Shown here piece after piece: positions 330 to 60,400 of a DNA stretch of 64,000 bases. Origin of the DNA: Zygnema circumcarinatum SAG 698-1b (Eukaryota; Plantae; Zygnematophyceae); contig CM074805.1 in NCBI GenBank assembly GCA_037447605.1, positions 4,001,361-4,065,360 on the forward strand. The letters are read 5' to 3'. Under the pieces are notes generated by a model. It saw nothing but the letters and a program-made list of their open reading frames with translations, did not search any database and was not told the origin of the DNA. Position numbers and translations under genes: made by a program. Each line of letters opens with the position of its first letter. Position 1 is the first letter of the stretch.

Positions 330-960
330 ATAGCTTACCGTACGGCTGGATCGCGCCCATGACCGCCGCGTCCAGTAAAGATACCGTACGGCCGAGATAC
401 CGTACGGAGGGACCTCGTTTAATCCGGTGGCGATTCGTACGGCACGGAAGTGGTGAGCAGCAGTTTTAAGCTCCGTGTGAACAGCCATTCGAGGGAAGTG
501 TGAACGCATTTGCGATGGATGACGACACCGTTGACATACCTACCGTTGACTGGCTTCTGCCTACGTGACGAATATATCCGTCGCAATTTTCTTCTGTCTT
601 GCGGACGTGGCATGACGTGGACGGGCGATGCCCAATGGGAAGCCTCTGCGCAAGGTCCGCTCCAAACGGAAACTTTCTGCGCCCACCACGTCGGATGATG
701 ACTGGACCTCGGCACGGCCGTACGGATACTTCTCATATTCATTGACCCGTGCAGAATATGTGCGTACGTGGCAACCACGTGGCGATTTTTATGCCGTTGC
801 CGGCGGCGGTTCCGGCGTAGGTCCGCGCGTGACGTGACGCCGCACGGCGGCCGGAGAAGCGCGATGGGCGGTCCCCACACGTGCGAAGGCGCCAGGCGGG
901 GGGACTAATTTTAGGGTTTTTTCGCTATGGCGGGAAGAGGCGGCGTATAAAGGGAGCGGC
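330..960 (+). promoter_or_regulatory. GC/CpG-rich upstream island of the PDV-like gene with 4 CCGTACGG palindromes, ACGT boxes, a telo-box and a TATA box
   Basis: CCGTACGG at 338, 384, 400 and 718; TAGGGTTT at 912-919; TATAAA at 946-951, about 140 bp before the ATG at 1093. Confidence 0.55.
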
Positions 961-1092: not shown

Positions 1093-3934
1093 ATGACGGA
1101 GGAGAAAGTTGCAATCGGCTCTGTGATAGCGCGGGCCTCAACTATTCTGCTCAGTTTGAACGATGCGATCGAGCGGGCTTTGAAGAATGAGCTCTCGAAT
1201 AAGAGTTCCCTTCGGAGGAGGTGCAAGCCGCATCTTCCCGTGTAGATCTCGTGATGTTGTCCAGGTCCTGTCGTGAGTCGGAGGAATGCACAAGCACAAG
1301 CAGGGAATGGATTTGAGGTAGCATTGGTAGGATTAGTTGTCGATTAGTCGTCTGGGGTACCGTGGAGATTGAGGTGGATGATCTTCTGAAGTTACTGGCT
1401 AAATGTGTTGGACTTAAACGACGCTTTTTTCAACCTTTTGCATGGAAGGTGTTGCTACTTGATTGGCTTGTGTAATCTAATCTTTTCTGCTCGACATGTT
1501 ACGTGGGTGGATCAGGCAGTCTTTAGTTCATGAAGGGAGCGTTCTCCAAGGGATATATTCTGGCGGTGTTTCAATAGATCTTATGTGAAATTTGCGTTAA
1601 GTAACGTCCTTTTTTTTAGTGTCGTTAAACTTTCTTTAAATCATCGTACACAACTGACACATTCTTCGCATTGATTGCAGCCACGGTGCGCCTCTTGAAC
1701 AGACGAGCATTATGGCTTCCCCGAGGTAAGCAAATGACAGCACTCTTTGTTCATCGTTGGCGGTTGCATACAACTGTTTGATATCAAAATTTGTTTTAGT
1801 ACGAAATGTATCCTAAGCCTTTTCATCCTTAAAACGCTCGCTCCTCACTGTCGAACTTCAACTCAGAGAATTTTATACGAAGCATTTTGACGACCCCACT
1901 TACTTCGCTGTGTTGAGGGGCACTCTCTGATGCGTGTCTCAAGGGAGCTTCTGATAAGAAAGTTAATTCATAATCCTCCGAATCGCAGTTAGTTCTGGTC
2001 TGCGGTCCATAATCTCATTTGACCTTGCCTAATCTAAAATATAAGGGAGGCATCCTCAAGAAGCATGTGCCACTGCTTATTTGAAACTGGAACTAGGCAT
2101 GTGCGAGCATTTTTCCAGTTTTCCGTTTTTTAATAGGTTTGGCTGGAAAGTTGGGCAGTCTGCTCATCTCTTATGTAGGATATCACTCTAATGCGACTTC
2201 GTTGCTCTTTCGGAGAATGCAGTGAGCCTAGGTCTGAGTACAGATTCGTGCCGACTGGAGAGGGGTATCCTCCTGCAGCACGGCCTGCGTATGCGGAGGG
2301 AGGGGTGTCAGGAAGGGTTCTGGAGGACTACTCCTTCTCATCAGGAATGGGTGCCAGAGACATGCCAAGGGGAGAAAGCAAGGGCGAGGCGCTAATGCTG
2401 AGGAAAATCAGGGATGCGCTTCTTGAACTGGAAGAGCAGCTTTACAGAGTGCAGGTGAGCCGAGTGTGGCAACTGATGGGTATTGTCTATACACAAAGGA
2501 TGCGCGGTGACTTGAGTCAAGCTGTAAAACGCAACCTGTGTTCATCTGTGGAGCAGGAGCTAGCAGAGCATCAGCGGGAGGAGAGGGCAGCTGCCAGCCA
2601 TGAGGTGGATTGCAAGCGTGAGGAGCTTCTGCAGTTGCTTCAACAGCACAAAGGTCAAGAATGGCAGGTAAACGGTGCAACCAAATTACAACTTTAAAAC
2701 TATAAACCTAGATGCTCCGACGGTTTGATGTGGTTTTTGTAAAAGGCATAACATTGGATGAATGTTTGGTCTGTGGAAGAAGGTATTTGGGAGAAACTTA
2801 GAGTCGTAACGCAGACACACTTAGCTAGAAGAACGCACATTGCTTTCTACGAACATTTGTTCTCCGGTGTCTGTGCCTTTCTTGCAGGTGGTCCTTGAAG
2901 TGTTGAAGTTTGCAGGTGGGGACGATAGCCAAGAATTTGGTGCGTCAGATTTGATGCCTATTGGCAGCAGCTCAGTTTTTTTTGAGAGAAGCATGCTGCA
3001 ATCGTGGAGTGGCGAAGCCACCGAGAGTGACGCTGGATTAGGGTCAGTAGAGAATCCGCATGACGACCTCTCCTCCCGTCCTGCCAGAGCAGATGGAAGC
3101 CGAGTTTCCCCTCGGAAGCCTGCAGATAGTGGGGGGCAATCGCTGAGACTTTCCTTCCAAGGAGCAGATACACGTTCCTTTGAAGACTGGGATGACGTCG
3201 AGAGTGTAGGACGACAGAGTGATTGCCGGAGCAGAGATGTGAACTCCGGGTCACAGCTGGTGGTTCGAGAAAGGGGGCACGAAATGGGTAGTCACGACGA
3301 GGCATCCGGGCAGAGTGAGGTTGAAGAACTCTCTGCGGGAACTGGGCATAGCGGGAATGAAATGCAAGAAGATATCGTGGACGAAGGTGACTTGGAAGGT
3401 GAAACGGATTTAGGTGCTGTGGTGATGAGCCTACCAGGGAAGGCTCTAGGGCTGCTGGGAGATGCTGCTGGGCATGTGGCCTCATTCTCTGTGAAAGTGG
3501 CTGTGGTGACTCTGGGCGTGGCGGCCGTTTTCTCTGTTGGAGATAAGCTCATGCGTGCTGAAAAAGTGAGAATAAGGAGTGTAGGGCCGGAATCTCGAAT
3601 GTTTGCTCCTTTCTCGCAGAGCGGTTCCACCCCTAAAGCAATCTTGAGCCCTGGGAGAAGAGTTCCGGTTCATACCACTCCTTCCAAGACTCCCGAGAAG
3701 AGACCTGCACCTGTGGGCAATGTTGTGGCGAACAAGTCAAGCCCACCGCCTATCCATAGCCATAATCATAGCCATAGCCATAGCCATAGCCATAGTCTCC
3801 CCTCAGAAGAGGCAGGCTCTCGCGTGTTCCGAGAAGGCGAATTCCCGCAGTGTACCATTCGCGAGCGTATCGAGCGGAAGGTTCAGCAGCAGAGTGGAAC
3901 AAGAAGAAAGGCGGTCTATCTTGCACGTGGCTGA
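1093..3934 (+). CDS. PDV: Plastid division protein PDV-like (outer envelope), 5 exons: 1093-1220, 1681-1725, 2223-2454, 2557-2667, 2888-3934
   Basis: GT-AG junctions stay in frame. N-terminus IGSVIARASTILLSLNDAI, then LRKIRDALLELEEQL and EHQREERAAASHEVDCKREELLQLLQQHKGQEWQVVLEVLKFAG match PDV coiled-coil blocks from recall. One hydrophobic TM (ASFSVKVAVVTLGVAAVFSVG), CTIRERIE, and a terminal Gly (YLARG*). Confidence 0.8.
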
Positions 3935-5243: not shown

Positions 5244-5702
5244 CTAATAGTTAGCAACGGAGAATGGCCTCAATGGTCAGGCTCCCAGAATCCCCAGAGT
5301 AGCCGCCGATCAATTGGGTCACACCCTTGAAGTGGGCTACCATACAACTTGTAGATCACGTCGTCTCAGGTCGAGGTTTTGGCTCTACGGAGAGCCTCCG
5401 CCCCCTTCCAGCACCCACAAGATAACGGCATACACCACCCTCTCTCCACCCCAACTGTCACTTCAGAGGACAGAGGCAACAAGGAACAAGGACAAGGAAA
5501 CTCTTTGGAACGTTGCTTCTATTACATCATGAAAACACTGAACAGAAGATTGCTACTTTTCAACGAGCGACTCTCTACCGTTGACGGAGAGGTCTTCGCC
5601 GTTTGCTTTTGCACATATTGCACAGCTTTGCCATATTTCGACCTGTATCGTGGTGCTTTTCTGGCAGAATAATACCTATACACCTGCACTCACATACGGT
5701 AC

Positions 5703-8700
5703 TCAGTTCGATTTTCCGTTGGGGCTTTCCCATGACTCGTCATTTCGGGGGACAATGATGCCATAGCCTCCGTGTGTTCTCTTGTAAAGGATGTTGATTT
5801 CTCCTGCAAATGAGACATGTGCAGGCGGCCGGACAAGTCAATGAGCCATGAACCAACCACGGTACCATTACTTGTAAAATGACAATGAACATTTCCCTTA
5901 GCAAAGTAAAAAATGTAAAAGAAGTTCACGTACCTAACACCTAAAGTACTGACTTCAGCAGTAATCCCCTCAAAACTACCCGATACAATTGGACCTCTAC
6001 AGTTCTGAGAAACAGCCTTACCGGAAGTCTCATTTCTGAAGGCGTAGAACTGATGCCCAAGATTGACGAGTTGCTCCACAGCCTCCTCAGCGCGCATCGG
6101 CTTCATTTCAAAGTACTTTGTTCTCACCACCTGCCGTCAAAGATCTCCAGTTTTTAGGATGTGCTCGATCCTCTCCCTCTCCCTCTCCCTCTCCCTCTCC
6201 CTCCATTCCCGATCCGCAAAACGATAAATCTCATGTGCAATTGACTCTCAAAGGCAGAACATGGACGTAAACTTGGCCCATTCACGTGAGACATCATTTG
6301 GAAGCTCCACTACTTGACTGCATTATGCAGAACTCACAGTCGTTTCCAAACTAGCAATAAAGGAATATTTGAGGATTGACATTATTTCAAACTATGTCCA
6401 ATCTTCCACCAAGAAACTACCACTATTCTGCTCTACGGAGGTCAAGTTAAGACCCCTGAAAATTGTTAAACCCCTCGAAAACTGCATCCAAGACGTCCAA
6501 CTCACCTCCGCTGGAATGTCATCCTCAGGCTCTCTATTCAAGATCGGAGTGATAGGGTCAGGCTCGCTCCCTATAAGCTCTCCCAACTTGGGCTTTCCGC
6601 GCATCTGCCAAGATCGCCCGTGACCGCCGTCCTTCTCCTTGATCTTCCGCAACTTGCGAGAAACAATGTCGGAGACCTCGTCAATTGCAGCGTACATTGT
6701 CTCATCCTCTTCTTCAGCTCGCAACACTCCATGCTTCTTGGTGAAGATGGTCACCTGTTACCCGAGTCCCCCGCACCACACAAGGACAGAAACCGTAATC
6801 GTTTGAAAAGTTCAAAAGATAAGAAAGACAAGGGAGGAGTTGAAGGGGGGGCAGATTTCATTATGGAGGAGTTTTCTTACCCAGAAAGGACTTACAATAT
6901 TTTAAAAGTACAACGAGGGCATTCACATTTTCATGACGTGGAGAGCCTACCAGTTTAGGACATGCAATATTAAGAAGTCTTAAATAGTGACATATTAACA
7001 CGAAAGCACAAATACAATGTTCACCATTACAAATTGGACGCCGAAAAAAAAGAAATTCCCAGTCAAAGAAACAAACAGAGGGAGGACCCAAGCAACAGCT
7101 CTTAGCTACCACTTTTTGTTAAGACAGTTCCAAAAGGCGACAGGAGCCATTATGAGCAATAGAAATTCTCCCAATCACCAGGACCGTGAGTCTTCTTTTC
7201 AATTCCCACTTTGCTAATCGTTTGAACTCTGCATAATGTTATGAATTTGCAAAAACCACCTCGCCAATCTCCTCGCAGCTAGCTAATTCAAAAAAAAAAG
7301 CGGAAAAAATAATCCAAAGCGCACAGTGCGTTTTGGGAGAACTTGAGGAGAGACTACAGGCTAGAAGCGTAAGAAAGAAACAGGAGCATATCCTCACCTC
7401 ACATCGTTGCAATTTCGGGCCCTTCCCTAAGTCCCCTCCTCGAACAGAGAGGCGCACATCGACCTCCCTAACCAGCGCCCCGTGGTTCTGCACCGCATGA
7501 CCGACCTTCTCCTCCACATATGACCTTATGGAGTCCGTAACCTGCAAAAAACAATAATGCTTCCCATCAGATGGATAAAGACTTCCAAACAAGGCAGTAA
7601 TTACCCTCCCTTTCGAGAACTTTAATCAGCAGACAAATGGATGACTTTACGCTCCTATATTACTATGAAAAACATGAAAAAAATAACTATGTATCAAGGT
7701 TTATTGAATTATCAGGTTAAATAGTTGTAGCATAGAGCATAAAATTCAGCCAAAACTAAGCTCTGTATAATGTAATGGACGACATACGACCTTAAGAAGC
7801 GACACATGATTCTGTTATATCAAATCTCCCCGTGGGAAAGTACTCCTAGAACTTGATTCAAGTTCTATCAGCTATACTTCCACAGAAATCGCCGTCAAGA
7901 TTTTGTCATATCGCAACAAAGCAATCACAACAGCCTGAAATTATCCCAAATTACTGACTCCCTGACTCAGCCTCAACTTGTACCAATCAATTCAGTGGGG
8001 AACAATCTCAGCCAATCACTCCATACATGGCAAAGCAAGAAAAGACGTTCGAACTGTGCAGGCTGATAATAAAGTGAGCGGCCATGAGCATACACAGTAA
8101 ACGAATTCGCTATATCTCACTCAAACAAGCCATCAAATTTTTTCGCTTGCGATATAAACCTGCAAATTCGATGCCGCAACTGGCAGATGAAAAGACTCTA
8201 CAAGGTTAAGAAACGCGAAACTTGGCAAAGACAGAAAAAATACAAAAAAATAAATAAATAAATAAATAAATAAAGGCCAAATTCTCTGTATACAAACCAA
8301 TTCCAAGAGCAGAATGAGCTGCATTTTGACCTTACCCCTCCATAGGTCACTCAGTTTTCTCAGAAAATCAAGTCCACATTGTTCTCCCTCCTCAGCATTC
8401 ACATTGTCTCGCCTCACCTCCATGTGCTTCCCCTGAATTATCAGTCGAACTGCAGCAAGTGTGCCGCCCCACGCCATAGAAGTCACTGTCCCTCTCCTCT
8501 GTTCAGCAGCGCCATTGCGCGCATCTCCAACATACAAACCGATAGCAACATTGCTTCGATCAGACGGCGCACTTGCAATTCGCAGCTTTCCGAAGACAGA
8601 ACAATAGGCGCCTCTCGTGAAGGCGCTTCCAAGACTGATACCCTCCTTGCGAGAATGGTTCTGCGTGCACGCAGAAGCTGCAGAGCTCAACTGGCTCCGC

Positions 8701-8750
8701 AGAGAAGTCTGCAAAGCCCGGGGAGTATGCAGCAGTCGAGCACTCGCCAT
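5703..8750 (-). CDS. PSRP1: Plastid-specific ribosomal protein 1 / ribosome hibernation factor (HPF family), 5 exons: 8750-8418, 7541-7398, 6754-6506, 6130-6022, 5803-5703
   Basis: Transit-peptide-like N-terminus, then [11 protein letters not shown]|[17 protein letters not shown]...[48 protein letters not shown] and [18 protein letters not shown]. Confidence 0.93.
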
Positions 8751-12790: not shown

Positions 12791-13020
12791 CCTAGTTCCC
12801 CTGTCCTGCCACCGTGGCCGCTTAGCGTATTGGAGAACGGGACTGCCCCATAGAGTCAAATATCTCCGTACAGTTCCAATCCTTGGAATATCCAGCTCCT
12901 TCAAACCTTGCTAGCACTACTTGCTCTTTGAAGGGGAGGAGAGAGGAGTGAGGGAAGCCGCTGTCAAGCTTTCTGAGCCGCCATTGTTCCTGCAGGCAGG
13001 TACTTGCTGAAAAAGGTAAA

Positions 13021-17892
<4,872 letters not shown>

Positions 17893-19707
17893 TAACGCTT
17901 CGACTGTCTTCTCTCACAGTAAGGAAAGCAGTGTGCGGCGGAGCTAGTTAGCTTGATGGCAGACACCTGGATCGACAGCCGACCTAATTAAGTGGCTTAG
18001 CGGTTTGTAAACAGCGCCTTAAATGGAAATAAAGAGAGTCTGTAACACTTGAATCGTGAAAGGTTTGGTTTGATAAATCGGCGGCGCCCGGATGGGTCTC
18101 GTTGCCGCGCAGGACCAGCTGCCGCAGCCACTCGCGGTTGTGCTTCGTCACTGCCTGTCACACGGCGGGGTTCAGAGTTAAGGGTTCAGGAGCCGTCTGA
18201 CTGACCACTCACTCTCACGAGCAGGGCTCGGGCTCGGGGGATGAGTTTGCAAACAGAAGGCTCGGGATTTACGCGGCTGTCTGTGTCGTAAGCTTCGGGA
18301 TTCAGTGAGCGGCAAAGGATAGGCAGATTCACAAGCGATGAAAATGAGCAGAATGAGGCACTCAATCCGCAAATGATCAAGCTATTGTTCCGATACTACA
18401 GGTTTTCATACAGAAAAAAAAGCTACAGCTTGTTTCATTATTGTGTGTATCGGGGAGGTATATCGAGGTCTAGCGATAGGAAACGGAAGAAAAGGAAGGG
18501 CTTGGCATGAATTTGTGGTCAACTTGAAAAAAAGTCACCGGTTGAATGCTACTGGCTCAGTGCTGGACCAGGGGAACGGCACATGAGTACTGATTCTGAT
18601 TTAGGCACTGGAAAGCTTACGATGACACTATTGCCTGACTTGAGTTCATACATACAAAGGTCCAAGCCCAACTCTTCCCCATCTCAGCGCAGGTAACCGG
18701 AACTGAACGATTCCTTCATGGAAATGTTCACACATACATGGTTACTGTCTCCCACTGATGAAGGAGTCTGAAGACACGTTTTGGACGAAGAAGCAGACTG
18801 TAAACAAGGCCCCTCCGTGAGGACGTCAGACAACATCGTTGAACAATGGACAAAAATGCCCCAGCGCGGGGGGAGATCTCCATGTGAATAAGTTATGGAG
18901 TGGCACGCATACAGCAGTGGTAAAGTAAAGCTTTGTAAGGCACTCTCTGAGATATACTCTCTCAGTCATCCGTCTAGGGCCTATGGGCCTAGGCTCGCAT
19001 ATGTGCAACGAAGGCTATCATGTGAAGACATGCAGGCCGTGCACCGCCATGCATAGCTTTATCACCACTTTCACTCTTTATTATACTAAGAACTTCTCAA
19101 AAGAAGGGGACTGCCCTTAAACAGCCATAATACATCAAAACGTTTCCGGGGTCAACCGAGTCCCCATGCCCTGACCTCTCCTTAACTGCCGCAGCTTCAC
19201 AAAACCTTCACGGAACTAAAAGTGTTTCACGAGAGGGCTTTCCCAAAGGAGGATAATCTCAAAGGATGGAGTTTCACCTGAACCTGTGGTAACCTAAAAC
19301 CACTTAAAGCCGTTTTAAAAAACTGAAGTAACTTTTAAGTAAGCCGAAGCACCTTCCCAACTTCCGAGCCAACTGGCATTGTCTCCCCATATTCCTCTGC
19401 AAACATCGCTAATCGCCAACACCCGTTCTCAGCAGAGCCAAATGCAGAGCAGCGAGCTGTAAGGGCTGCTGCCCGCCCGGATCTCATGGGTTGAATTTCA
19501 GAGAATGACCCCAGCTATAAGCCAATACTATCCTGCAACTGTCCGTTAGCTGACCTAAACTTTTAAGATTGACGGACAACAGAACGAAACGGAATGGAAC
19601 GGAACGGGACAGGGTGGAGCGAATCTGAATGGAATTGCCTACCTCTGCTTGTGAGAGTCCTTCCTCCAAACTGCCATATGCACAACCTACCTACCAAGAT
19701 CCCGTAT

Positions 19708-22700
19708 TCAGTCTGGCAGATCGATTGAACTATCCCCTAAAGCGTCCACATCGACCGCAGGAGGTGTCATGGCTCGCACACGTGACTGGCGAGGAGTTTC
19801 ATCGCCAGAAAGGTAAGGTGCACCGGAGTTGCTTCTAGACAAGGATCGACTGCTACTAAATGAGTGAGAACGGGGGGAGAGAAAGTTCGGTTCATGTGCT
19901 AACGGGGACTTTGGCAATCCTCCACTCAGTGTTTTGCCATTGAGCTTGCCAGTAAGTCCCCCGCTTGGGTTTCGGACAAACTCCAAACTTTTGCTGATGC
20001 CCGGGGGGGCCTCTTTGCTTTCCGAGGCAAGGTCTATCTTTATGCGATCCTCCTCAGGCAGGCTGGCAAGCACCTTTCTATAAGCCACGATGCTTGGAGG
20101 TGTTCTTGGAACATCTGATGACTTTGGAGAATCAACAGGGGTCTCGTCATGTCTCGCATCTTGGAATGGTCCCCGTGGTGAAGGCAAGCTAGACAAATCG
20201 ATTTCTGGCAACCCATCCTTAGCCAGGTTTGAGCCTCGCCGACTGATGCTACGAGGAATAGGAAGCTCTTGCAGCTGTTTGGGCGGCACTAAGTGAGAAA
20301 TGGGTGAAAGGAAAACGTTCTTCTCTTCTGAACCAAATATAAAATAATGATCTGCAACCCCTCGGTTACCGTCTCCTCCAGACTCCCTTATTTTCCACTC
20401 TTCACCCAAATCATCGTCCTCATCGTCATCGTCCTTCTCTCCTTGAATTTCTGGGAACAAATCTGCTAACCTTCCTGGTGGCCCAACCCCTCCCAACGTT
20501 GGCCCTGCCACGCTCGTCACAGTTTCCACAACCTCCACGATTTCCACGTTCTTCTCCTCCGGAATAGGGGCAATAATTGGAGCGTGAGGGATAGGAGATC
20601 TCTCAGGCTCCCCTTGCCGCCTATGTCTGCTGGCCACGTGGTTGAGGCTGACAAGCAGGCTCACAATTAGCGCTTCTGTTCTATCCTGGTTTGCATGATG
20701 AAGGGACTGCAGGAGGGTCAGTTCAGTATGTCCCTGCAGCCGGCGTTCAGCGGCATATCTGCGGTAGAAATGGACCATAATGTCAGACGGAACTGACATT
20801 ATTAACTGGGAAGGCTCTCGAAAAGCAGGGGTGAGTCTCCTTCTATCCAGGCTATCCGTCTATCCTTTCCGTGAAGCTGCTAAGGAAAGGCAGCAGGATT
20901 AGGGTCACTGATGGACTGTCCTATCAAGATAGTTTTGTTTCAGACAGCATGAAACGCGGAAATGGGCCCATGACTTGGACTATAATTAGCATGAAATAAG
21001 CCACAAATGACCAGTTTTCATTTGAGTTTGTGAATGAAACAGGGAAGGGGCAAGCTGGGAATACCGCACAGTATTAGCACCCATAGTTACAAGCCAATCA
21101 AGGACACTCTCCATCCGCTCCACCAGGGTATCCGTGTCCTCCTGGTCAAACCACCCACAGGCCCTCTCACTCTGTCATGATTGAGCCATACGTCACTTAC
21201 ATGGATGTCTCAACTACTCCGAAAGTAGTATCTTTCAGCTCATCAACATGGGTCACTAGGTGTTAGGAAGGAACCACTCTCACCTGTGCCATACTTCCTG
21301 ACTTCAATAGGGCCCTCTTAAGCTTCCGCTTCAGGGAGGGGGTCAACATGCTATACAATGTATCCCGCAGCTGAGCGGCAGCAAATGGCCTCATGGCCTG
21401 CAGCAAGTCAAAGCAAATAAGGTTGAGGAAAGGTGGGAATGTCGGAGGTAGGCCAAGGCCAATGTAGAGTCACTATAATGGTTGATTCGGCCGGGCATAA
21501 AAGTGGGAAATCGGAACCAAGCTTGAGTCGTATAATGAACAAATCTTACGACAGAACCTCATCGACGTTTGTATGTGATTCTGGTGGCTCACCAGATTAT
21601 CAATCACGTTGATGACATTGGCGTAGTGAACTGCCAACCCAGATACTCCCAGCTTCTGCAAGTCGCTTGGAGATTCCCTAGGCCGATCCATAAGTCCACC
21701 CACTTTGACCACTGCCAAAAGAAAAAGCACTGAATGAGCAATGCCAACAATTGCCACCAAAGAAAACCTTGCAAGAGTCAAGTTCCGTTCTTCCATGTAC
21801 AAGCTTATCTAGGAAGCAAAAATCCATTGCGAAGAAATGCTGAGCTAATTTTAGTATCTTGCCCGGAGCTGCACCACGGAAGCTCCCAAAGGCATGAATA
21901 ATGATGGCAAAAAAAGTGTATGAGCAACCAGATAACAACATATCTGCAAGTCTGCGGAAGTCCACTTAGTGCTGGCCACACATGCCTTCACATCTAGTGA
22001 AATATTTAACATAGGCTCACACAGTACCCAGCCTGCTTAAACATCCAGTTGAAACGTATGGACAGCCCACCTTGCTGCCCAAACACCTGAACGATTTGCT
22101 GATGTAAGAATATTATAACCTCAACCAACTTTCCCACCACCTGTTGAACGCCCACTGGCCCCCATGTGGTATTAGCGCATGAACTAGACTTGAAAGGAAC
22201 TGACTGTGGATAAACTATGGTGAGTTAGGACCAAAGGAACAACAAATTGTACAGCTACAGGTGTATCAAATAAGTGAAGTGGATCGCCGCAGTATTCATG
22301 CTATACTAGATAACTCAAACATTTCCAAATTTCATGATGTGATTGCACTCAAGTAGTGTTGTAGTGAAAAAAATCCCTTTGTCAAGCACTATTGTATAGG
22401 CAAAACAGGTCAGCTGGCAAGTCTCCAATAAAATAAAAGCTAAATTCGGAGCAATCATATAACTTGCGGGAATTGAACTGACCCAATCAAGTCGTTTGGT
22501 CCACAGGCTTTTCTTTTTTAGGGTCTTCACTGACTTCTCTCGTCCCTTCAAGTCACTCTTCAAGGAGGCAAATGGATCTGCAATCAGGATAACCAATGAA
22601 CGTGAACAACAAAATGGACCAGCGACAGAAGAGAAATGCATTAGAGAGTTGAAAGCAACATTAAATATAAGGCACCTACCTTTCTGAGAGCCACTGCCCT

Positions 22701-25700
22701 TCTTCTCCTCCCTATCATCCGACTTCTCTTCACCCTGTAATTTTCGTTGATACAATTGCTCAAGTGACTTTAGACCAATCAATTCGTGGTAGAGCTCCTG
22801 ATTAACCAAAACCAGCAGCCCCACATACACACACAGCAACACGGTACCTTAAGAAAGCAGTTGTCAAAACATGGCACTCACGAAAGGTACATATGATGGC
22901 ATGTTTGCGCACAATTCGACTTCAATCTGGTTGGCTCCAAAAGCAAGCTGCTGAAATAAAGAATAACAGAGTAGTGATATTCATGTTTGACCTAACTCCA
23001 TCCTCTTGACTACCATATACAACACACGCGTCGCATGTATCTTCGTTTTGGAAAATCTTCGGCAGCTTTCTGAAGAAATGGAGCGAAGCATTTAGAGTTC
23101 CTTTACAAACCACTTTGGCTTAGGACTAAGATTACAGCATCATTGCTTTAGGCAAGTCAACACGTTATATCATTCCTAGTATGACCTCAAGCTTCAACCC
23201 ACAGTCCGCATGACCATCTATTTGCAGCTCACCGCGGTTGCCTGGGCATGGCATTCCATGTTCTTCAGCTCCACTTCAATATCATCTTCGGTCAACTTTA
23301 GCTTCGGTTCCTCCACTGTGCCCAGCCTGCAGACGCCACTCTCCATACAATGGTTGAAATTATTTGAATTATTACTATTATTATTTGAATCATGCCTCTC
23401 CTTCCATACAATTCAGTCCTTCCATAAAATCCATCATTTATTGAGGACCTGCTTGGGCTTCCTAAGGGTAGAGAAAACCGGTGTCTTTCAAAGCGCTGGA
23501 AGTAAGAAATTGCATGTGAGAAGCTTAATGCAAACATTGCCTTTTCTCGCGGATGTTGGAAGCACATTTCCAATGCCCACGTGACCCACTCTTTACAAGG
23601 CCTTCTTGTAAGGGGCGTGATAAGGGGTGAGAGGTAAGGGGCGTTGGAAGCAAGACAGGCTCCCTATGCTAATTTCAAGAGTCAGGAGGTGTCAACGTGC
23701 ATAGAAGGTAGACTCCAATAAACTGCTGATGTGTGCCCTTGAATTTGAGGACGATTATTTGGCACAAGTTTAATCAACAAACCAAACAATGAATCAGATA
23801 TAAGACCAAGAGGTCAGTGGACGTCGTTGAGAAGCTGCTCACACTATCCCACATTCATTGCCCTAATAGCAAAGTTTGTGGGTCTCACATGTTGAAGTCG
23901 TGATCTAAGGACTTCATAACTGGATCGGAACAGAGCAAGCCAAGGCGAGCCACCTCCTTCGCCACTGCTCGCAGCTCCATCCTAAGCAGCTCCAATTGAC
24001 AAGCCCCAAGAGACCCCCCTTGCCTGCCCATCTCAGCCAGTCTGACGAACTGCAGCACAATCTTGAGGGAGTCCTTACTCCGAAATCTCAAGTAGCATAC
24101 ATGCTTCTACAGATTCCCCGTTCAACAAACTACTCCATTATTGCTCTAATGCTTCAGAATTCTATGAAAATACTTACAACAAGCCTAGCCCTTGCATAGC
24201 ACCCTCCGAAGACATGACTACAGGCCCACACATGACGTGGCCCTTGAAATCTTGAGTACACCCACAATCCTGCACTCTCCAACCATTCGATTTTCCTCAC
24301 AAACGCTGCTACAAACGTCACCTTTTGTCTTCGGCCGCAATGCACCAAAGGTCAAGTTCGTCCTCTGACACCAACTGCCGGACACCTTCCGAGTTCAGGA
24401 CCTGCTTTCTGAGGTCCTCAATGTCGTCAGGCTGCAACGAGTTCCGAAGATTCAGAACGCGCACAATCACGTTGGCGATTTCAAAAGCCAGAATTTCAAT
24501 GCGACTGCTCCCCCAAACCTCCCACAATCCCTCCCCACAAATTAAAAACAGAAAAAAAAAAAACCAAACAGAAACTTTGTGAGCTTGCTTCAGTTACGTC
24601 ATGAGACTGCATGAGACTAACTGCGGGGAAAAGGATAAAAATACGAAGACACTCTTAAAAGCAGTGCTGTCAACAAACAATGTAATGCGCCGCGTGCCCC
24701 AAGTTTTACAAGAACTGATGCAACAGCAAGCACCATTTCCTTACTGCTGTCTGACAAATTTTGTAATTTAATCTCCCCGTCACATAACTAAACACGTTGC
24801 AGCTTGTCACAACTATCTCAGGGTTCCATTGTTGTTTTGCACATATTGCTATACAAAAAAATGCGTTTAGAATCAAGCGAGGGACAACCTATCATGAGAG
24901 CACAACAGATATAAACAAAATCAGGCTGGTAAGGGTCATTCCTAAATTGTCTGACCCTGCACGTAATTTCTGCTATTCACAGAGTACAGTAACTACTACG
25001 TAGACTAATGAGGCACCCAGGCAACGCAACGATAAGTAAGCTCATGCACTTGAAGGGTGCCACATCTTCTAATTTTGTAATCACACATTCTTGCTCTCTA
25101 TCTTAAAATCTGTTGTCTACCCAGCACCAAAAATGGCACCCATTCCAGGTTCGCAAGCCCTAGCCACTTTTTGAACAGGCATTGTTTTTTTTTTCTAAAG
25201 AAAATACTTGAGGTAAAGCTCAAAGGTGTTGTTCAAGAACAGCTTGCTAATTGAGTTGGCTAATGTATCAAGCTCTCGGACAATGGTTTCTATCAATCAT
25301 TCAATGCTGTAGCTTCCACGACATAACCAGTCAGGCTGGCCATTTATATCCCTTGCTACCTACATCCCAACTAGACATTGAAGGCCTCTAATTGGGAAGA
25401 AGAGTTGGCAACAATAGCAACACTTCAGTTCTAAATGCCTTCAGAGAACATACCCTCCACGTGCCTTTGCCTTGCCCCGTTCATCTTCAATGCTGCACCC
25501 AAGCCCCAACCTAGCTGGCTGAATGAGGATGACTGCACTTCTCAGCAAGTCAGAAAAATGAGAGTCCTATTGATGCGATCGAGTGGAAAGACCGCGGGAA
25601 GGCTTTAGACATGTTACGCTGGATTGCTGATTGGCGGGCCGGACAAAACTGCTGTTATGTCGCCAATGGTTTTCATGAGTCCTCCCCCGCTTGCACTCCT

Positions 25701-26973: not shown

Positions 26974-29900
26974 CACTCCCAATTGGCAAGGGGAGACCAC
27001 AGAGCCGTGAAGCCTATCAACTGCCAACTGATGAAAACCAGAAAAAGCAAATGGTAATCGTATGGTGAAGGGTTGGACACTTCAAAGGACGACTCCAAGA
27101 ACGTCGAGGTCAGGTAACGAATGTAAACGAACAAGCATGAAAAGGACTGACGAACATTTAAGAAATGCCAAATCATTGTCGTTTTCAGATGCCTAACCAG
27201 TGAGCGTGCTATACATTCTTACTTCGGAGCACAAAAAAGAGGCAAAAAGACGTTCTCCCAGAATGCAAAAAGAATTACCGAACAATACTACATTGTGAAG
27301 TTCCGCGCAAAGGACGACATGAGCTTCTTGTTAGCTGAGAAACACGTATACAGCGGTCATAGGCTAAAAAGTCATCCTAAATAGTTATCACATTATGCTA
27401 CTTTCCAGCAGAGGCAAGCTGCATTAGCACCGTATAGGCAATGCTACACTGAAACACTGCCTGACCGGGGCAATCAAGTTTCTTCAGCAAACCATCTTTC
27501 ACATTCAGGGAAAACGTACTGTCGGGCATATATGCTCAACAAACTTTGGCGACCACTCAAAATCACATGCCATATTGGATGTGTTGGAAGAAACCACAGA
27601 TATTGAGCCTGATGTGCATTCAACAAGAATGCTGGTCGCATACTCACTCCTGTGGAGCTGACATTTCAAAACGATGGGGACGCCTGCAGAGCCAAGTTAC
27701 GAATATTTGCTACTCTAAAATTTTTTTTTTAGCGTGCAGAGGATAGCAGGACCACATTCCTCGGTTCCTCACCAAATACGGCTGCTGCAAGCTGTCGCCA
27801 TGACCCCCACAGGACTTCTCATTACTCGAGAGCAACTATTATCCCCCCCTGTCTCTCTCCCTAAAGCCTGTAACAGCATCTCAACCGCTTTCTACACGCC
27901 ATGTGTCCATATGCTCTAGAATATGCACCGCAACCTTACCATCACTACCCCTCCCCCACCCCTCCCCTCGCCTCCTCCCTCTCCCTCTCCCAGCAAGCAC
28001 TCTAGAGACCTCAAATCTCCCGCCACATCCGCCACCTGCAGCCTGCCTCCAAGCCCCCTGTCACTCCGCCATAGCCGCGCCTCCCTCAGGCCTTTCACCT
28101 TCCTCCCCGCCTCTCCCATCCGCCATTGCCATGGCCCGAAGAGGATCAGAGCTTCCTGGGACTCCACGTGGCGCGGACTTCCCGGGCCTTGAAACCGCTT
28201 GACGGTCGTCAAGTCGTTTCGCCGGCCGGCGCCTTTTGCCCGCCGTCCCGCTAGGGTTGGGGGCACGGTCCCCCTCCGACCCGTGCCCAGGGGCACGTGC
28301 CCCCCCCCCCTTGGGGGGGGGGGGGCATGCCCCTTTTTCGTGCCCCGTGACGTGACTGCATTGAGCAATTCAAATCGACCCCAAAAAGAATATAATATTT
28401 TTAAAACGGTACGGATGAAGGTACGGAAAGTACAGATGAATGTACTAAACGTACGGGTCAAGGTACAAATGTACGAAAAAATATGAAAAGTACGGACAGT
28501 ACTCAACACAACTCTCAAAACTGAGGATCCAGCACAGCACAGTTTTTTANNNNNNNNNNCACTCCCAATTGGCAAGGGGAGACCACAGAGCCGTGAAGCC
28601 TATCAACTGCCAACTGATGAAAACCAGAAAAAGCAAATGGTAATCGTATGGTGAAGGGTTGGACACTTCAAAGGACGACTCCAAGAACGTCGAGGTCAGG
28701 TAACGAATGTAAACGAACAAGCATGAAAAGGACTGACGAACATTTAAGAAATGCCAAATCATTGTCGTTTTCAGATGCCTAACCAGTGAGCGTGCTATAC
28801 ATTCTTACTTCGGAGCACAAAAAAGAGGCAAAAAGACGTTCTCCCAGAATGCAAAAAGAATTACCGAACAATACTACATTGTGAAGTTCCGCGCAAAGGA
28901 CGACATGAGCTTCTTGTTAGCTGAGAAACACGTATACAGCGGTCATAGGCTAAAAAGTCATCCTAAATAGTTATCACATTATGCTACTTTCCAGCAGAGG
29001 CAAGCTGCATTAGCACCGTATAGGCAATGCTACACTGAAACACTGCCTGACCGGGGCAATCAAGTTTCTTCAGCAAACCATCTTTCACATTCAGGGAAAA
29101 CGTACTGTCGGGCATATATGCTCAACAAACTTTGGCGACCACTCAAAATCACATGCCATATTGGATGTGTTGGAAGAAACCACAGATATTGAGCCTGATG
29201 TGCATTCAACAAGAATGCTGGTCGCATACTCACTCCTGTGGAGCTGACATTTCAAAACGATGGGGACGCCTGCAGAGCCAAGTTACGAATATTTGCTACT
29301 CTAAAATTTTTTTTTTAGCGTGCAGAGGATAGCAGGACCACATTCCTCGGTTCCTCACCAAATACGGCTGCTGCAAGCTGTCGCCATGACCCCCACAGGA
29401 CTTCTCATTACTCGAGAGCAACTATTATCCCCCCCTGTCTCTCTCCCTAAAGCCTGTAACAGCATCTCAACCGCTTTCTACACGCCATGTGTCCATATGC
29501 TCTAGAATATGCACCGCAACCTTACCATCACTACCCCTCCCCCACCCCTCCCCTCGCCTCCTCCCTCTCCCTCTCCCAGCAAGCACTCTAGAGACCTCAA
29601 ATCTCCCGCCACATCCGCCACCTGCAGCCTGCCTCCAAGCCCCCTGTCACTCCGCCATAGCCGCGCCTCCCTCAGGCCTTTCACCTTCCTCCCCGCCTCT
29701 CCCATCCGCCATTGCCATGGCCCGAAGAGGATCAGAGCTTCCTGGGACTCCACGTGGCGCGGACTTCCCGGGCCTTGAAACCGCTTGACGGTCGTCAAGT
29801 CGTTTCGCCGGCCGGCGCCTTTTGCCCGCCGTCCCGCTAGGGTTGGGGGCACGGTCCCCCTCCGACCCGTGCCCAGGGGCACGTGCCCCCCCCCCCTTGG

Positions 29901-30135
29901 GGGGGGGGGGGCATGCCCCTTTTTCGTGCCCCGTGACGTGACTGCATTGAGCAATTCAAATCGACCCCAAAAAGAATATAATATTTTTAAAACGGTACGG
30001 ATGAAGGTACGGAAAGTACAGATGAATGTACTAAACGTACGGGTCAAGGTACAAATGTACGAAAAAATATGAAAAGTACGGACAGTACTCAACACAACTC
30101 TCAAAACTGAGGATCCAGCACAGCACAGTTTTTTA
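26974..30135. repeat. 1576-bp apparently identical tandem duplication (26974-28549 = 28560-30135) split by a 10-N gap
   Basis: Identical ORF translations offset by 1586 bp; the N gap at 28550-28559 sits exactly at the junction. Confidence 0.92.
29995..30088. repeat. Degenerate minisatellite of about 21 bp carrying nine GTAC cores
   Basis: GTAC at 29995, 30007, 30016, 30028, 30037, 30049, 30057, 30076 and 30085. Confidence 0.8.
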
Positions 30136-39050: not shown

Positions 39051-42000
39051 CTACAATATATGCACAGTTGTTGTGTAATTCTCACACAGAATGGCATGTA
39101 CGGCGCATCTGACGCCGCCGGATTTGCAAGGTGCCCTCCTGATCCTGAAACCGCACTCGGCGGATCGGACGGCGGAGGAGCGGCCGACGGGAAGCTGCCC
39201 CGCGTGGATCCTCGACCGTCCGATTCGCTTGCACAAGCAGAACTCGGGGGGAGGTGTTTTCTCTCGGGAACACCCAGCCGTTGGATTCTTTAATCGACCG
39301 CTACGATTGAAGCACAGTGGGCGGAAAACTCGCCCCGGTCGACACCTCCCCAAGGGCGAGCCGCGTACTGTACCCAGATCCAGCCACGCAGGTATCGCCG
39401 CACCCACTGGCCCTTGTAGCACAAGATAAGTGGGGTTAAACAAAGACTGCTGAGCTAGCTGCAGGTGCTGTACGGCCACACGCGCGTCCGTGCTGAAACT
39501 AATGAAGGGTTGGGTTGGTTCTGTGGGTCTGCCTGCAGCATAGAGCCAGGATCCGGGGGATTCAGAGGTACGCGCAGCGGAAGACGTAGGGATCCTGAAG
39601 ATGTTCCCACCGGCGGCTGGACTCGATGCGCAAAGAGCCCTTCCTTGGGGGCTCTCTTCCCCTGTCCTCTCCTCGGCTAGTCTCTTAGCTAGGCTTCTAG
39701 TTATCATCGGTCATTGGGATAAGCGTAGGGCAGATTAGGACAAGATGGCAGCTTTGCATAGTGACAGCAAAGGGAAAAACAGTGCTCAACTTAGATAAAG
39801 GTTGCATTTTGGAAACTCACCCCAGCCAGCGGTTGGCTGGGGAATGTCATTACAATGAAATCGTCTTCTCACTGAAATCTTTGTCTAGCTGGGCTGAATG
39901 GGACGTCTGAATGCTATCAGCAAGAAGAGCCTTTCTCACTCTCTCTCTCTCTCTATCTATGGCATGGAACTCTCACTCTCTCTCTCTCTCTTACTTAGCA
40001 TCTGTTGCTGTAACTGAAGAGGAAGGAAAAAGAAGAAAGAAGAACAAGAAGACAAACCACACAGCAAATACAAATACTAAGCCCAGCACTAAAAGACAAA
40101 ACAGCATCACTGACATCCCATCTACTTAACACTGACAATAGATCTTGAGTCTTAGCAGTGACAGTCTCTGATTGGCCAACTGCCCACNNNNNNNNNNGGT
40201 GAGTCTTGCCGATGTCGAGTGAATGTCTCGCGAAAACTAGGTGATTTCGGCGCAGCACTTGGCGTAGTTGGGAATGCTTGATCGGGTCTGAGAGGACCGC
40301 AGGTCCCAATCGCATCTGCCCCTCTATTTCCAGCCACTCCTCATCACCGATGGTCTCATGTGGGGGAAAGCTGGGTGCAGGTATCACTGGCGTCAAGAGT
40401 TCCTCCGTCGGCATACCGAGAGCTGGACTCTGAGAAGGAGTGGGAGTCTCGTCATCAGTATCAGAATTGGCCGATTCATGAGGAGGAGGGGGGCTGCCGA
40501 CTGAATGGTACATAGTGATCTCCGGGTAGGAGACCTGCGCCGTGGCGTGGCGCTTGGGGTAGGCGGAGGTGGTAAGGGACTCGAGGATGATGGGGAAGGA
40601 GCAGTCCGTCCCGCCAGCAGATAAGTGCAGTTGACAGGTAGAAAAGTCGATTTGTGCTCCCATCGCAATGAGCCAATCTGAGCCCAGCAGAATAGAATAG
40701 TGTTCAGCGGCTGTGATGATTGCATTCACTGTGGCTCCCATCTCGCCAAGACTGATGACCACTTGGGCGCTTCCCAATCCTTCATGTAAGCTCCCTTCAA
40801 CTCCCACATATCGGGGGATGGGCTCAAGTGTCTTGTCCAACTTAACCCCTGCCGCCTTCATCACAGGCTTGGACAGAACTGTGCGCATAGCCCCCGTGTC
40901 GATCATGGCTTTGCTGGGATGACCGTTGAGCCATACATTGACAATGATCCGCACGTTGGGCGTTGGGATGAGAGGGAGGATCTGAATCTGGCGAGGAGGA
41001 TGGCGAGGGGAGCGGACTGGGTCCGGCGGAGGCGCCGTAGCCATGTGGTGGATATCGGCCGGCGAGGGGACGTCCGGAGGAGATGTCATAGGAGCTGTGG
41101 GAGGCCGCAGGGTGGCCTCTGCACTGTCGGCCAGCTTTCGAACTACGGCGGCAGCACCTGGTACAAGCTGCATCAACTGTGACAAGGTAATGCCGATCTT
41201 AGCCTTGTCTCCCATGAGTTGATGGACCATGCGCTCAATCAAGGAGAGGCCGTCTGCCCGGGGGAGCTGTCCACGATCGGTGCTTGGGGCAGAAACCGGG
41301 CTGCTGTGGGCCGGTGCTGGAGGCTCGACGTGCATCCCTCGGGTCGCTGCCGCGGCCTTGTTGCGCGCTGGCGGTCCTTCATCGAGATTCAATGTCCTCC
41401 TCAGGTGGGATCCCAAGGGAGGACCCGTGAGAGGAGAGAGATGATTGAAGTTCTTCTGACAGGTGGCTGACCGACGGAGCTGTGCCTCAGGAACTGGCGT
41501 TGGTGACACTTGGCAGGGGAGGATGAGACATGAGAATGAGCCGGCTTTGAGAGGCAGCCTGCGAGGCAGCCGCAATCTCCGTGATCCCAGCCTCAGCCTC
41601 AGCTTCAGAGTGCTGGGTGATTCTGGAGAAGCCTGACCAAATGCCGCGGGAACCTGGGCAGCCGTGATCGAGAGCAGGATCGTGCTCAGGCATCTGAAGG
41701 AGCCTTCGACAGGAAAGCTGGCAGTTGATGGGGTGGTAGATGGATAGGTGGTTGCGAGTACGGTGTAAGCGGCGAGGAGGTGGCCTGCTCAGGGAGCCGG
41801 TGTTCTTGAGGGTGGGGGAGAAGCCGGGAGCATATCCATGAAAGTGATCTCGGCAGGTGAGTTCCCTGCTGCCGCCTCTTTCCCCTTTCGGGCCTTCTCA
41901 CTCGAGAGTCTCCGCATGCACACACGGGCATCATGTCCCGTGATCTGACAGAAGGTGCAGGTCCATGGTCCGCAACGCAGCCGCGGATTGTGAGTTAGGC

Positions 42001-42190: not shown

Positions 42191-42200
42191 NNNNNNNNNN

Positions 42201-52924: not shown

Positions 52925-58177
<5,253 letters not shown>

Positions 58178-58379
58178 CGCGAGGCGAGCCCACTCGAGGA
58201 GAGCCGCGGGAGCAGGAAGGGAGGAAAGGAGAAGAGAGGGAGGGAGGGTGGGAAGGAGGGAGAGAGGGAGAGAGGGAGGGAGGGAGAGAGGGGAGGGGAG
58301 GGGAGGGAGGGAAGGAGGGCGAGGGAGACAGGGAGAGAGGGAGGGAGAGAGGGAGGGAGGGTCGTCGGCGCTGACCGGA

Positions 58380-60400
58380 AGGTACTACTCCATCGCCGTA
58401 CGGTACGGCGCCAGGTCCGCCTTGCGCTGGATATGTACGGTTTGACCACCTCTGGTCAAATGGGTGGGGCTGCCGTACGGTACGGCTGGCCCTACGGACT
58501 TCCGGGGCGGGCTGGCAGCTTTCGGGCAAAGGGAGGGAGGGAACATTTTCTCCGGGCAGCGGGCGGACCCCGCTGGAAATAAAAATCAATTTTATCGAGG
58601 GACAAAGTGGCGTCAGCAACCGCAGTTGACGTCAATAATTCGTTCCTGCGAACCAACGGGTTTTGTCTTTTTTTCTTTTTGTCCGTGAGCAGTCATGATG
58701 ATGTGAAGCGCCGTTGTCGTATGCGCGTGAACGCCCCTTATTGAGGCGCCGTAAAGCGCCCGTTTTTCTCGCGTGGCGCTTCCGAAGCGGCCGCGCGAGT
58801 TTTGTGTCCTGACGCAAAAGGACAACCATACCGTACGGTACCAAGCGCCGCCGACAGGTGCCAGCGCCCGAAAACGTTACGTCGTCCAGCTGGAAAAATT
58901 ACTCCCTCCAGATCGTCACTTTTTCCCTGCCCGTTATCGTACGGACGTCAGTACGGCCCGAATCTGTCCGTATGGCTCCGGGCGGCGGCGAGCGCCGCGT
59001 CCTCCGCCTCCAGCAGGCGCCACGTCGCGCTCGGCCTCGGGCCGTCCGCGGAAGTTCTTTGACCGCGCCAGCTCACCGCCCCGCTTTGGCTTGGGCGGTT
59101 TTTGGATTTATCTGCCGTCACCGTACGGCGATCCACGCACATGCGCCGCCGCCTGCCGCCGGGGCCGATCGCTAACCGCCGGCGGCGGGCGGGCGTGCCG
59201 CCCGGGGATGGGCCCGGTCCCCACGCGGCCGTACGGCGGGCTGGCGGGCGGGCGCGCGGGTCGCTGACCGGTCCCGCGAATTTCAGGCGGGCGGGCGGGC
59301 AAGTGGGCGTCAACTCCCCGCGGGCGGGGCCGGTCGGTTTCAACGCCGCGCGCGGCCGCTGGCGGCGTTACCTCGCACGAGCGGGAGGGTGGGCGGGCGG
59401 CGCCTGTCAGCGCGCAAGCCGCCAATCGCGACTGGGGCCGCGTCGCGAGTCGCGACAACAGACCTGACCCGCTTGCACGCGCGTCACGCCAGCCACGTGG
59501 CGCGAGCACATTCGCCGTCCGGGCAGGCGGGCGTGGAAGGCACAGCTCACGCCGGACCCGAGGCAGCGACGGCCCGCCCGCCCGCCCGCCCGGCGGGTCG
59601 GAGCATCAGCAGCTGGAGATGAACGCAGTTCCATGCCGGCGGTAACACGACGGCGCAACGCGGCGGAGGGGCCCCTCCGACCCTCCGCGTGAGGACAGTT
59701 GGCAGTTGAATTGTTGTGGCGCCTGCCGCTGTGTCTGGCTGGCTGTCTGTCGGAACTGGGGCGGGGGCGTTGTCGCTTTGTCATGTGTCAACTGCGTTCA
59801 ACTGCGTTTGAATGAGGGAGGAGAACCGTGCAGGAGTTGGAAACTGGCGGGGGAGAGTGATTTCAACCGAACTGGCATTCAACTCGCTGCAACCACTGGG
59901 ATAAAAACCGCCCACACGAGCCAGTCGGATGGATGCCGGAGGAGCGCAATAACTTCAATAAGGATAGGGCACGCCACATAAAACGTCGAACAACGAATCT
60001 TCCAGGGCGGGGCTCCACGAGCGGGTCCAGCCCGCGCCACGTCGGATGGCGCGTTGGCGTGCTCAGAAACCTGCGGGTTCCGCGAACTTGCGAAACCACG
60101 ATTGCTTTTGCCAGTGGGATCGCCGCCCCTTCGCTGTGTCCGCGAGCGGCGGTCGCGGCGCGCCGTTGGCTGCGAGCGAGCCGGCGGGCGCGGCAGCCAC
60201 GTGGCGCCGCGCGGTTGGACAGCACCTGGTTTCCGGTCAACGTTCGGATCGTCGAAGAGTGTTGCGGGAGAGTTTCGGGAACAGCTCTGACGTGGCAGCC
60301 ACGTTGACGCCACGTCGGCACAACGGGCCCCAAATGGACCCTGGGAACGCGGCGCACACTATGGCCAGACGTTGACGCGGGCGGACTCGTGTGTGTGTCG
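58380..60400. promoter_or_regulatory. About 2-kb GC/CpG-rich island upstream of WRKY, in the divergent WRKY-AUG4 intergenic region
   Basis: CCGTACGG at 58396, 58473, 58831, 59121 and 59229; inverted W-boxes at 58441-58460; TGACGTCA at 58627; several CACGTG boxes. Confidence 0.55.

Follow-up and report, generated by a model that had tools for sequence, protein, structure and literature searches.

The plastid division proteins PDV1 and PDV2 are the closest described relatives of the gene treated here, which lies at positions 1093-3934 on the plus strand of a 64-kb stretch of DNA (the whole stretch is called the window below). The terminal Gly of PDV1 inserts into a pocket of PARC6 (PMC9945983). 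As to the age of the family, the part of PMC11285052 that cites Liu et al. (2024, Cell Reports) puts the origin of PDV2 in streptophytes and that of PDV1 and PARC6 in ferns; a charophyte origin has been stated for both PDV1 and PDV2 (PMC13650779), and a single PDV1/2 orthologue has been described for Spirogyra (PMC13519894). Public databases already contain PDV homologues from Chara braunii (GBG86295) and Spirogloea (SM000125S26051). The existence of PDV before land plants, which an earlier note on this DNA had put forward as a new point, is therefore not new: algal PDV proteins are public, and the point has been published (PMC11285052; PMC13650779; PMC13519894). The window adds to these a very divergent member. 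The locus is very probably an intact and constrained gene for a PDV-family plastid division protein, of PDV2 type, from a streptophyte, and it represents a far-diverged subgroup.

The gene forms one frame of 1563 nt (521 codons, with the stop codon TGA at 3932-3934 counted), spread over five exons of 128, 45, 232, 111 and 1047 nt, none of which contains an in-frame stop. All four introns run from GT to AG, agree well with the plant-type consensus and have phases 2, 2, 0 and 0 in order. Their donors are, with the slash at the exon end, gag/GTGCAA, gag/GTAAGC, cag/GTGAGC and cag/GTAAAC, and every acceptor ends in ..GCAG; the G+C content is 0.52-0.60 in the exons vs 0.41-0.50 in the introns. Two relatives of the same type were recovered. 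The first, P0001, was assembled in five RNA-seq runs (SRR8128902 to SRR8128908); its transcript contigs carry an open reading frame (ORF) of 528 amino acids, which reads without interruption and is collinear with the window over all exon junctions, for example at EEQLYR[VI]Q/EL..HQ...QHKGQEWQ/VV.EV.KFAGG, where the slashes mark exon junctions and the brackets give alternative residues. The distance between the anchors KNE[IL] and [DE]GY is 36 residues in P0001 and likewise in the window, provided that the 45-nt exon 2 is counted. Because the transcript ORF is collinear and keeps this spacing, the splice model is supported, and the clean five-exon ORF described in the earlier note stands. The second relative, L002, is a 9.5-kb genomic contig (run SRR9302961), the last exon of whose PDV gene is P0024; it follows the same five-exon plan, with an exon 2 equivalent of 42 nt and an exon 4 of 111 nt.

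For the family assignment, a profile was built from 18 canonical PDV2 proteins and the translated exons were aligned to it singly with hhalign; the window was tested in this way exon piece by exon piece, and P0001 served as its full-length stand-in for search, fold and tree. Exon 1 matches profile columns 8-37 (E 1.1e-7, probability 94%), exon 3 columns 59-88 (E 1.3e-5, the match stopping exactly at the exon end), exon 4 columns 90-125 (E 5.3e-9), and the membrane region of exon 5 columns 236-274 (E 1.9e-4), so that four window pieces follow the profile in collinear order. Gene structure points the same way: the sole intron of the PDV2 genes of Riccia and Selaginella lies at ..EEQLE[SC]LQ/A.. 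in phase 0, which is the site of intron 3 in the window, and a phase-0 intron after EEQL...Q is present also in L002. In a 14-sequence alignment, the window tail FPQCTIRERIE lines up with FPKCVVKERVE of embryophyte PDV2. An exhaustive HMMER search with P0001 recovered proteins named PDV2 by their sources from Selaginella, Riccia, Ceratodon, Cryptomeria, Typha, Carex and Tasmannia, together with Chara braunii GBG86295, Spirogloea muscicola homologues and a few giant coiled-coil proteins, and a precomputed, weak match to the Pfam family PDV_N (PF28116) is on record for P0001. Judged from sequence, PDV-family membership rests on four independent features and appears well supported. The family call of the earlier note is thus borne out by the ordered profile matches (E 1.1e-7 to 1.9e-4) and by the intron 3 site common to canonical PDV2; the N-terminus (AIGSVIARAS..NDAIERALK) and the CTIRERIE motif, which it had called PDV2-like, both align to PDV2.

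Comparison with P0001 also bears on whether the frame is a gene at all. Identity is 30/41 (73%) in exon 1, 30/37 (81%) in exon 4, 56/60 (93%) in a block of 60 residues around the membrane segment and 24/35 (69%) in the C-terminal motif; it falls to 31-38% in the linkers and is 44% over the whole length of exon 5. In the conserved segments, nonsynonymous differences (pN) between window and P0001 amount to 0.07, and synonymous differences (pS) to 0.78, which is saturated; this indicates long divergence under strong purifying selection. Linker identity as low as 31-38%, together with this saturation at synonymous sites, means that P0001 and L002 come from species distant from that of the window. 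A chance open frame, or a decaying pseudogene that merely resembles PDV, would agree with the absence of a direct Pfam match (from a Pfam copy that holds no PDV model) and with transcript evidence that comes from the relative P0001 alone. Such an origin is nevertheless highly improbable, given five in-frame exons with consensus splice sites, collinear PDV2-profile matches, an intron site common to canonical PDV2, strong constraint despite saturated synonymous sites, and an orthologue, P0001, that is intact and transcribed.

The protein begins with a helical PDV_N domain, encoded by exons 1, 3 and 4 and the first part of exon 5. A long linker, acidic and disordered, comes next, then a single membrane helix, a tail of ~125 residues and the final Gly. 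Within the exon 5 product the order is VVLEVLKFAGG, an acidic Ser/Gly-rich linker, the membrane segment, an intermembrane-space linker and the C-terminal motif. The only hydrophobic peak above 1.6 on the Kyte-Doolittle scale reaches 2.07 and lies at VASFSVKVAVVTLGVAAVF, about residues 196-222 of exon 5, in the C-terminal third of the protein; this single peak, together with the hhalign match of the region to the PDV2 membrane region (E 1.9e-4), agrees with the one transmembrane segment proposed earlier. So does the last residue with the terminal Gly claimed earlier: it is invariant in 14/14 aligned tails and in the 18-sequence PDV2 alignment. An AlphaFold2 model of P0001, made with an alignment of 26 PDV proteins, has helices at 2-39, 107-133, 139-162 and 168-177 with pLDDT >85 and a membrane helix at 381-416, the remainder being disordered, and its confident long helices fall at places that match the putative coiled coils of the window. 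A His-rich patch is shared by position, P0001 having HKHHHHHH where the window has HSHSHS, and thus seems to be kept just ahead of the C-terminal motif. Searches of the PDB returned no match for the window tail and, for P0001, His-tag artefacts only.

How far the window protein has moved from canonical PDV2 is best seen against three non-seed references (Riccia sorocarpa KAL3685542, Selaginella moellendorffii XP_024540262 and Ceratodon purpureus KAG0616152). Shared with these are the N-terminal helix ..RAS....[IL].DAIER..K.E., the core elements IRDAL..LEEQL and ..H.G.EW.VV.E...FAG, one membrane segment, the tail motif FP.C.[VI][KR]ER.E, the terminal ..RG and, for Riccia and Selaginella, the phase-0 intron after EEQL...Q. 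Unlike the window protein of ~520 residues, however, the references have only 300-360, and their overall identity to P0001 is just ~26-31%. The window type differs further from canonical PDV2 in its long acidic Ser/Gly-rich linker and His-rich tail patch, and from the non-seed proteins in three additional introns, in the lack of CPPGK and of a PF...PDVLYGRG block, and in a basic insert of 15 residues before the end. From Chara to seed plants, by contrast, canonical PDV2 is very uniform at its N-terminus (ME.DEI.VVL.RASELH.KISDAIER..).

Several points count against the reading preferred here. The canonical tail motif, CPPGK...C[VI]VKER.E.PF....PDV..G.G, is represented in the window by its middle part only (FPQCTIRERIE); the CPPGK motif and the PF...PDV block are absent, and the end is ARG rather than GRG. 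Neither the four larger exon pieces nor P0001 matched anything in a Pfam copy that had no PDV model. A maximum-likelihood phylogeny of 23 PDV proteins leaves P0001 unplaced, at the tip of a very long branch (3.35 changes per column) and with no partner that has support. The transcript evidence, from the five RNA-seq runs, is for the relative P0001. Binding to ARC6, finally, is an extrapolation and the weakest step of the functional reading, because CPPGK and PF..PDV are missing. On the other side, the canonical tail motif does not define the whole family, since Chara and Spirogloea lack even more of it. The loss of CPPGK is not peculiar to the window type either, since P0016/L003 (run SRR2103747) and P0040, both of PDV2 type, also lack it; these carry DDFP.CVVRERLELPF. 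P0016 is probably from a fern, as its run number belongs to a fern transcriptome project.

Such divergence raises the question of whether the window holds a lineage-specific paralogue, that is, a divergent copy with a changed role (for example another intermembrane-space partner or none) beside a canonical PDV2 elsewhere in the genome. The extreme divergence, set against a canonical PDV2 that changes very little between Chara and seed plants, would fit such a copy, as would the disappearance of the CPPGK and PF..PDV motifs. There are also parallels: in mosses two genes of PDV2 type are retained (Ceratodon M758_5G093900 and M758_8G020000), and for Spirogyra co-expression of the single PDV with genes outside plastid division has been reported (PMC13519894). 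However, the known function depends on the N-terminal domain, the membrane segment and the terminal Gly, and it is exactly these parts that the window type conserves; no canonical PDV is seen within the 64-kb window. A paralogue of this kind is thus improbable, and an intact PDV2-type gene of a divergent subgroup remains the preferred reading.

The earlier note had further described the gene as a mixture of PDV1-like and PDV2-like traits, taking the LARG end for the PDV1-like one. Arabidopsis PDV1 ends in ..MMARG. The PDV2 proteins of liverwort, moss, lycophyte, Chara and Spirogloea all end in ..GRG (YGRG, TGRG or NGRG); an RG end is therefore no mark of PDV1, since it is general to non-seed and algal PDV2, and the supposed mixture is left unsupported. 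With PDV1 itself (Arabidopsis At5g53280; a fern and seed-plant clade) the window protein shares the general PDV architecture and a terminal Gly. None of the searches returned a protein named PDV1, and a word search with the fern protein P0012 gave PDV2-type and unnamed proteins only; a second fern clade, to which P0012 belongs with P0015 and P0034, ends in ..HRLG or ..CALG, not ARG.

The earlier note had gone on to a wider proposal: the window could hold a PDV from before the duplication, and, if the host is a streptophyte alga, the PDV machinery would be older than land plants. Part of the comparison would suit it. In the maximum-likelihood tree the protein falls outside every supported embryophyte PDV2 clade, its gene has four introns where Riccia and Selaginella have one, and the window type occurs in no annotated embryophyte proteome of the searched collections. 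Its membrane region resembles that of Chara alone among the proteins compared: 13/29 residues of the window block are identical in the Chara segment (GFSVKVAIVG), and no similarity of the segment to Riccia or Spirogloea was detectable. The two algal proteins, Chara braunii GBG86295 and Spirogloea muscicola SM000125S26051, are like the window protein in being PDV_N proteins with one membrane segment, and end in ..GRG. Yet their N-terminal domains are canonical and far nearer to land-plant PDV2 than that of the window protein, the Chara gene is intronless, and both lack the C..[KR]ER.E motif, which the window protein shares with embryophytes. Also on the embryophyte side, hornworts were, among the matches, the one major embryophyte group without a named PDV. 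In addition, non-seed PDV2 proteins in general have the RG end, and algal PDV is public and discussed, so that the conclusion would not be new even with an algal host. With PDV1 placed later, in ferns, any PDV from outside ferns and seed plants is pre-duplication by default. Taken as a whole, this proposal is a possibility on which we would place rather less than even weight; as to the host alone, our opinion leans slightly towards an alga over an embryophyte.

A related and more specific suggestion is that the window, P0001 and L002 hold the PDV of a streptophyte-algal lineage outside Chara, the Zygnematophyceae and land plants; we regard this as unlikely. No PDV of the window type beyond these three was found in word-index searches with exon 5 and P0001 or in the exhaustive HMMER search with P0001; in the protein collections, the word-index search with exon 5 led to P0001 alone and that with P0001 to itself alone. 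The three share domain order and the blocks STILLSLNDAIERA, LPGKALGLLGDAAGHVASFSVKVAVVTLGVAAVFSVGDKL and FPQCTIRER[IM]E...VYLARG, except that the tail of L002 ends in LAVG. In both the window and L002, a gene for PSRP1 adjoins that for PDV (at 5291-6331 on the minus strand of L002), and the PSRP1 exons of the two are 55-85% identical. Order and orientation differ, PSRP1 lying head-to-head upstream of PDV in L002 and tail-to-tail downstream of it in the window. Riccia, Selaginella, Chara and Ceratodon have no PSRP1 gene in the 10 kb around PDV2; the window and L002 are therefore of a single lineage, distinct from these four. If the lineage did lie outside Chara, the Zygnematophyceae and land plants, the PDV link, including its Cys-x-x-[KR]-E-R-x-E tail motif, would date to early streptophytes, Chara and Spirogloea would each have lost the motif on their own, and the linkage to PSRP1 would serve as a lineage marker.

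The coordinates of the PDV gene, its parts and its immediate neighbour are listed below. The TATAAA motif upstream of the start codon is, from its sequence, a possible core promoter element.

Features of the PDV locus and its neighbour; positions are those of the window
Feature	Position	Strand	Remarks
TATAAA motif	946..951	+	~142 nt 5' of the start codon; read from sequence
Exon 1	1093..1220	+	First ATG of the frame; N-terminal helix MTEEKVAIGSVIARASTILLSLNDAIERALKNEL..; ends in phase 2
Exon 2	1681..1725	+	45-nt mini-exon in variable linker; phase 2 in, phase 2 out
Exon 3	2223..2454	+	Ends ..EALMLRKIRDALLELEEQLYRVQ; first half of the conserved helical PDV_N core
Intron 3	2455..2556	+	102 nt, phase 0; position and phase match the sole intron of Riccia and Selaginella PDV2
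Exon 4	2557..2667	+	111 nt, 37 amino acids ELAEHQREERAAASHEVDCKREELLQLLQQHKGQEWQ; second half of the PDV_N core
Exon 5	2888..3934	+	348 amino acids and stop
Single predicted transmembrane segment	3473..3553	+	..HVASFSVKVAVVTLGVAAVFSVG..; Kyte-Doolittle peak
(CCATAG)7 microsatellite	3754..3795	+	Coding; HSHSHS.. stretch in the intermembrane-space linker
C-terminal tail	3824..3931	+	VFREGEFPQCTIRERIERK..AVYLARG; terminal Gly codon 3929-3931
PSRP1-type plastid ribosome hibernation factor gene	5727..8750	-	Pfam matches Ribosom_S30AE_C and Ribosomal_S30AE; immediate neighbour of the PDV gene

Elsewhere in the window, a Pfam scan of 60 further ORFs matched only PSRP1, glutamate-1-semialdehyde (GSA) aminotransferase, DUF668, WRKY and a retrotransposon protease, and Rfam and tRNA scans of the window found no rRNA, tRNA or other Rfam match. 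Exact look-ups of 11 window ORFs in the protein collection found none of them. The genes next to PDV and further along (PSRP1, GSA aminotransferase, DUF668, WRKY) point to a green plant, probably a streptophyte. The GSA aminotransferase gene (Aminotran_3) has several exons at ~13000-17900 (+). It is followed by a gene with DUF668 (PSI-like, plant-specific) at 19711-22900 (-), the last exon of which is an ORF of 363 amino acids at 19708-20799 with a long low-complexity tail; a PDB search with this exon gave no match. The stretches 26974-27273 and 28560-28859, offset by 1586 nt, form a 100% identical direct repeat, of which the second copy begins directly behind a gap of 10 N at 28550-28559, and the ORFs 27916-28575 and 29502-30104 are identical in sequence. 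The repeat most likely arose in assembly, as a duplication flanking the gap, rather than in the genome itself. A fragment of a long terminal repeat (LTR) retrotransposon with a gag-type aspartyl protease domain lies at 39995-41575 (-), with assembly gaps at 40188-40197 and 42191-42200. A gene for a WRKY transcription factor has its last exon at 52925-54064 (-); this exon encodes the C-terminal half of the WRKY domain and a further motif, which we take to resemble those of group IIb WRKY proteins. The stretch 54000-60400 is G+C-rich (0.55-0.66) and of low complexity, with long overlapping ORFs on both strands whose translations are rich in Pro, Ser, Gly, Glu and Arg; the two that were scanned there, 54409-55593 and 55721-56470, had no Pfam match.

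By analogy with Arabidopsis PDV1 and PDV2, the window protein would reside in the outer chloroplast envelope (PMC9945983; PMC13650779). On the cytosolic side, its helical N-terminal domain would recruit the dynamin DRP5B/ARC5, and the tail would reach into the intermembrane space, where the C-terminal end, including the terminal Gly, may enter a pocket of ARC6 or of an ARC6-like protein. In this way the stromal FtsZ ring could be coupled to the outer ring. PDV is a link invented by eukaryotes, which ties the FtsZ/ARC6 ring of cyanobacterial descent to the dynamin ring, and PDV dosage sets chloroplast number. A PDV that is very divergent and yet clearly constrained, like that of the window, shows what is kept in the long run, namely the helices of the N-terminus, the membrane block, the C..[KR]ER.E motif and the terminal Gly. 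The window gene leaves the current view of how the link arose unchanged, and adds an unsampled lineage to reconstructions of its rise.

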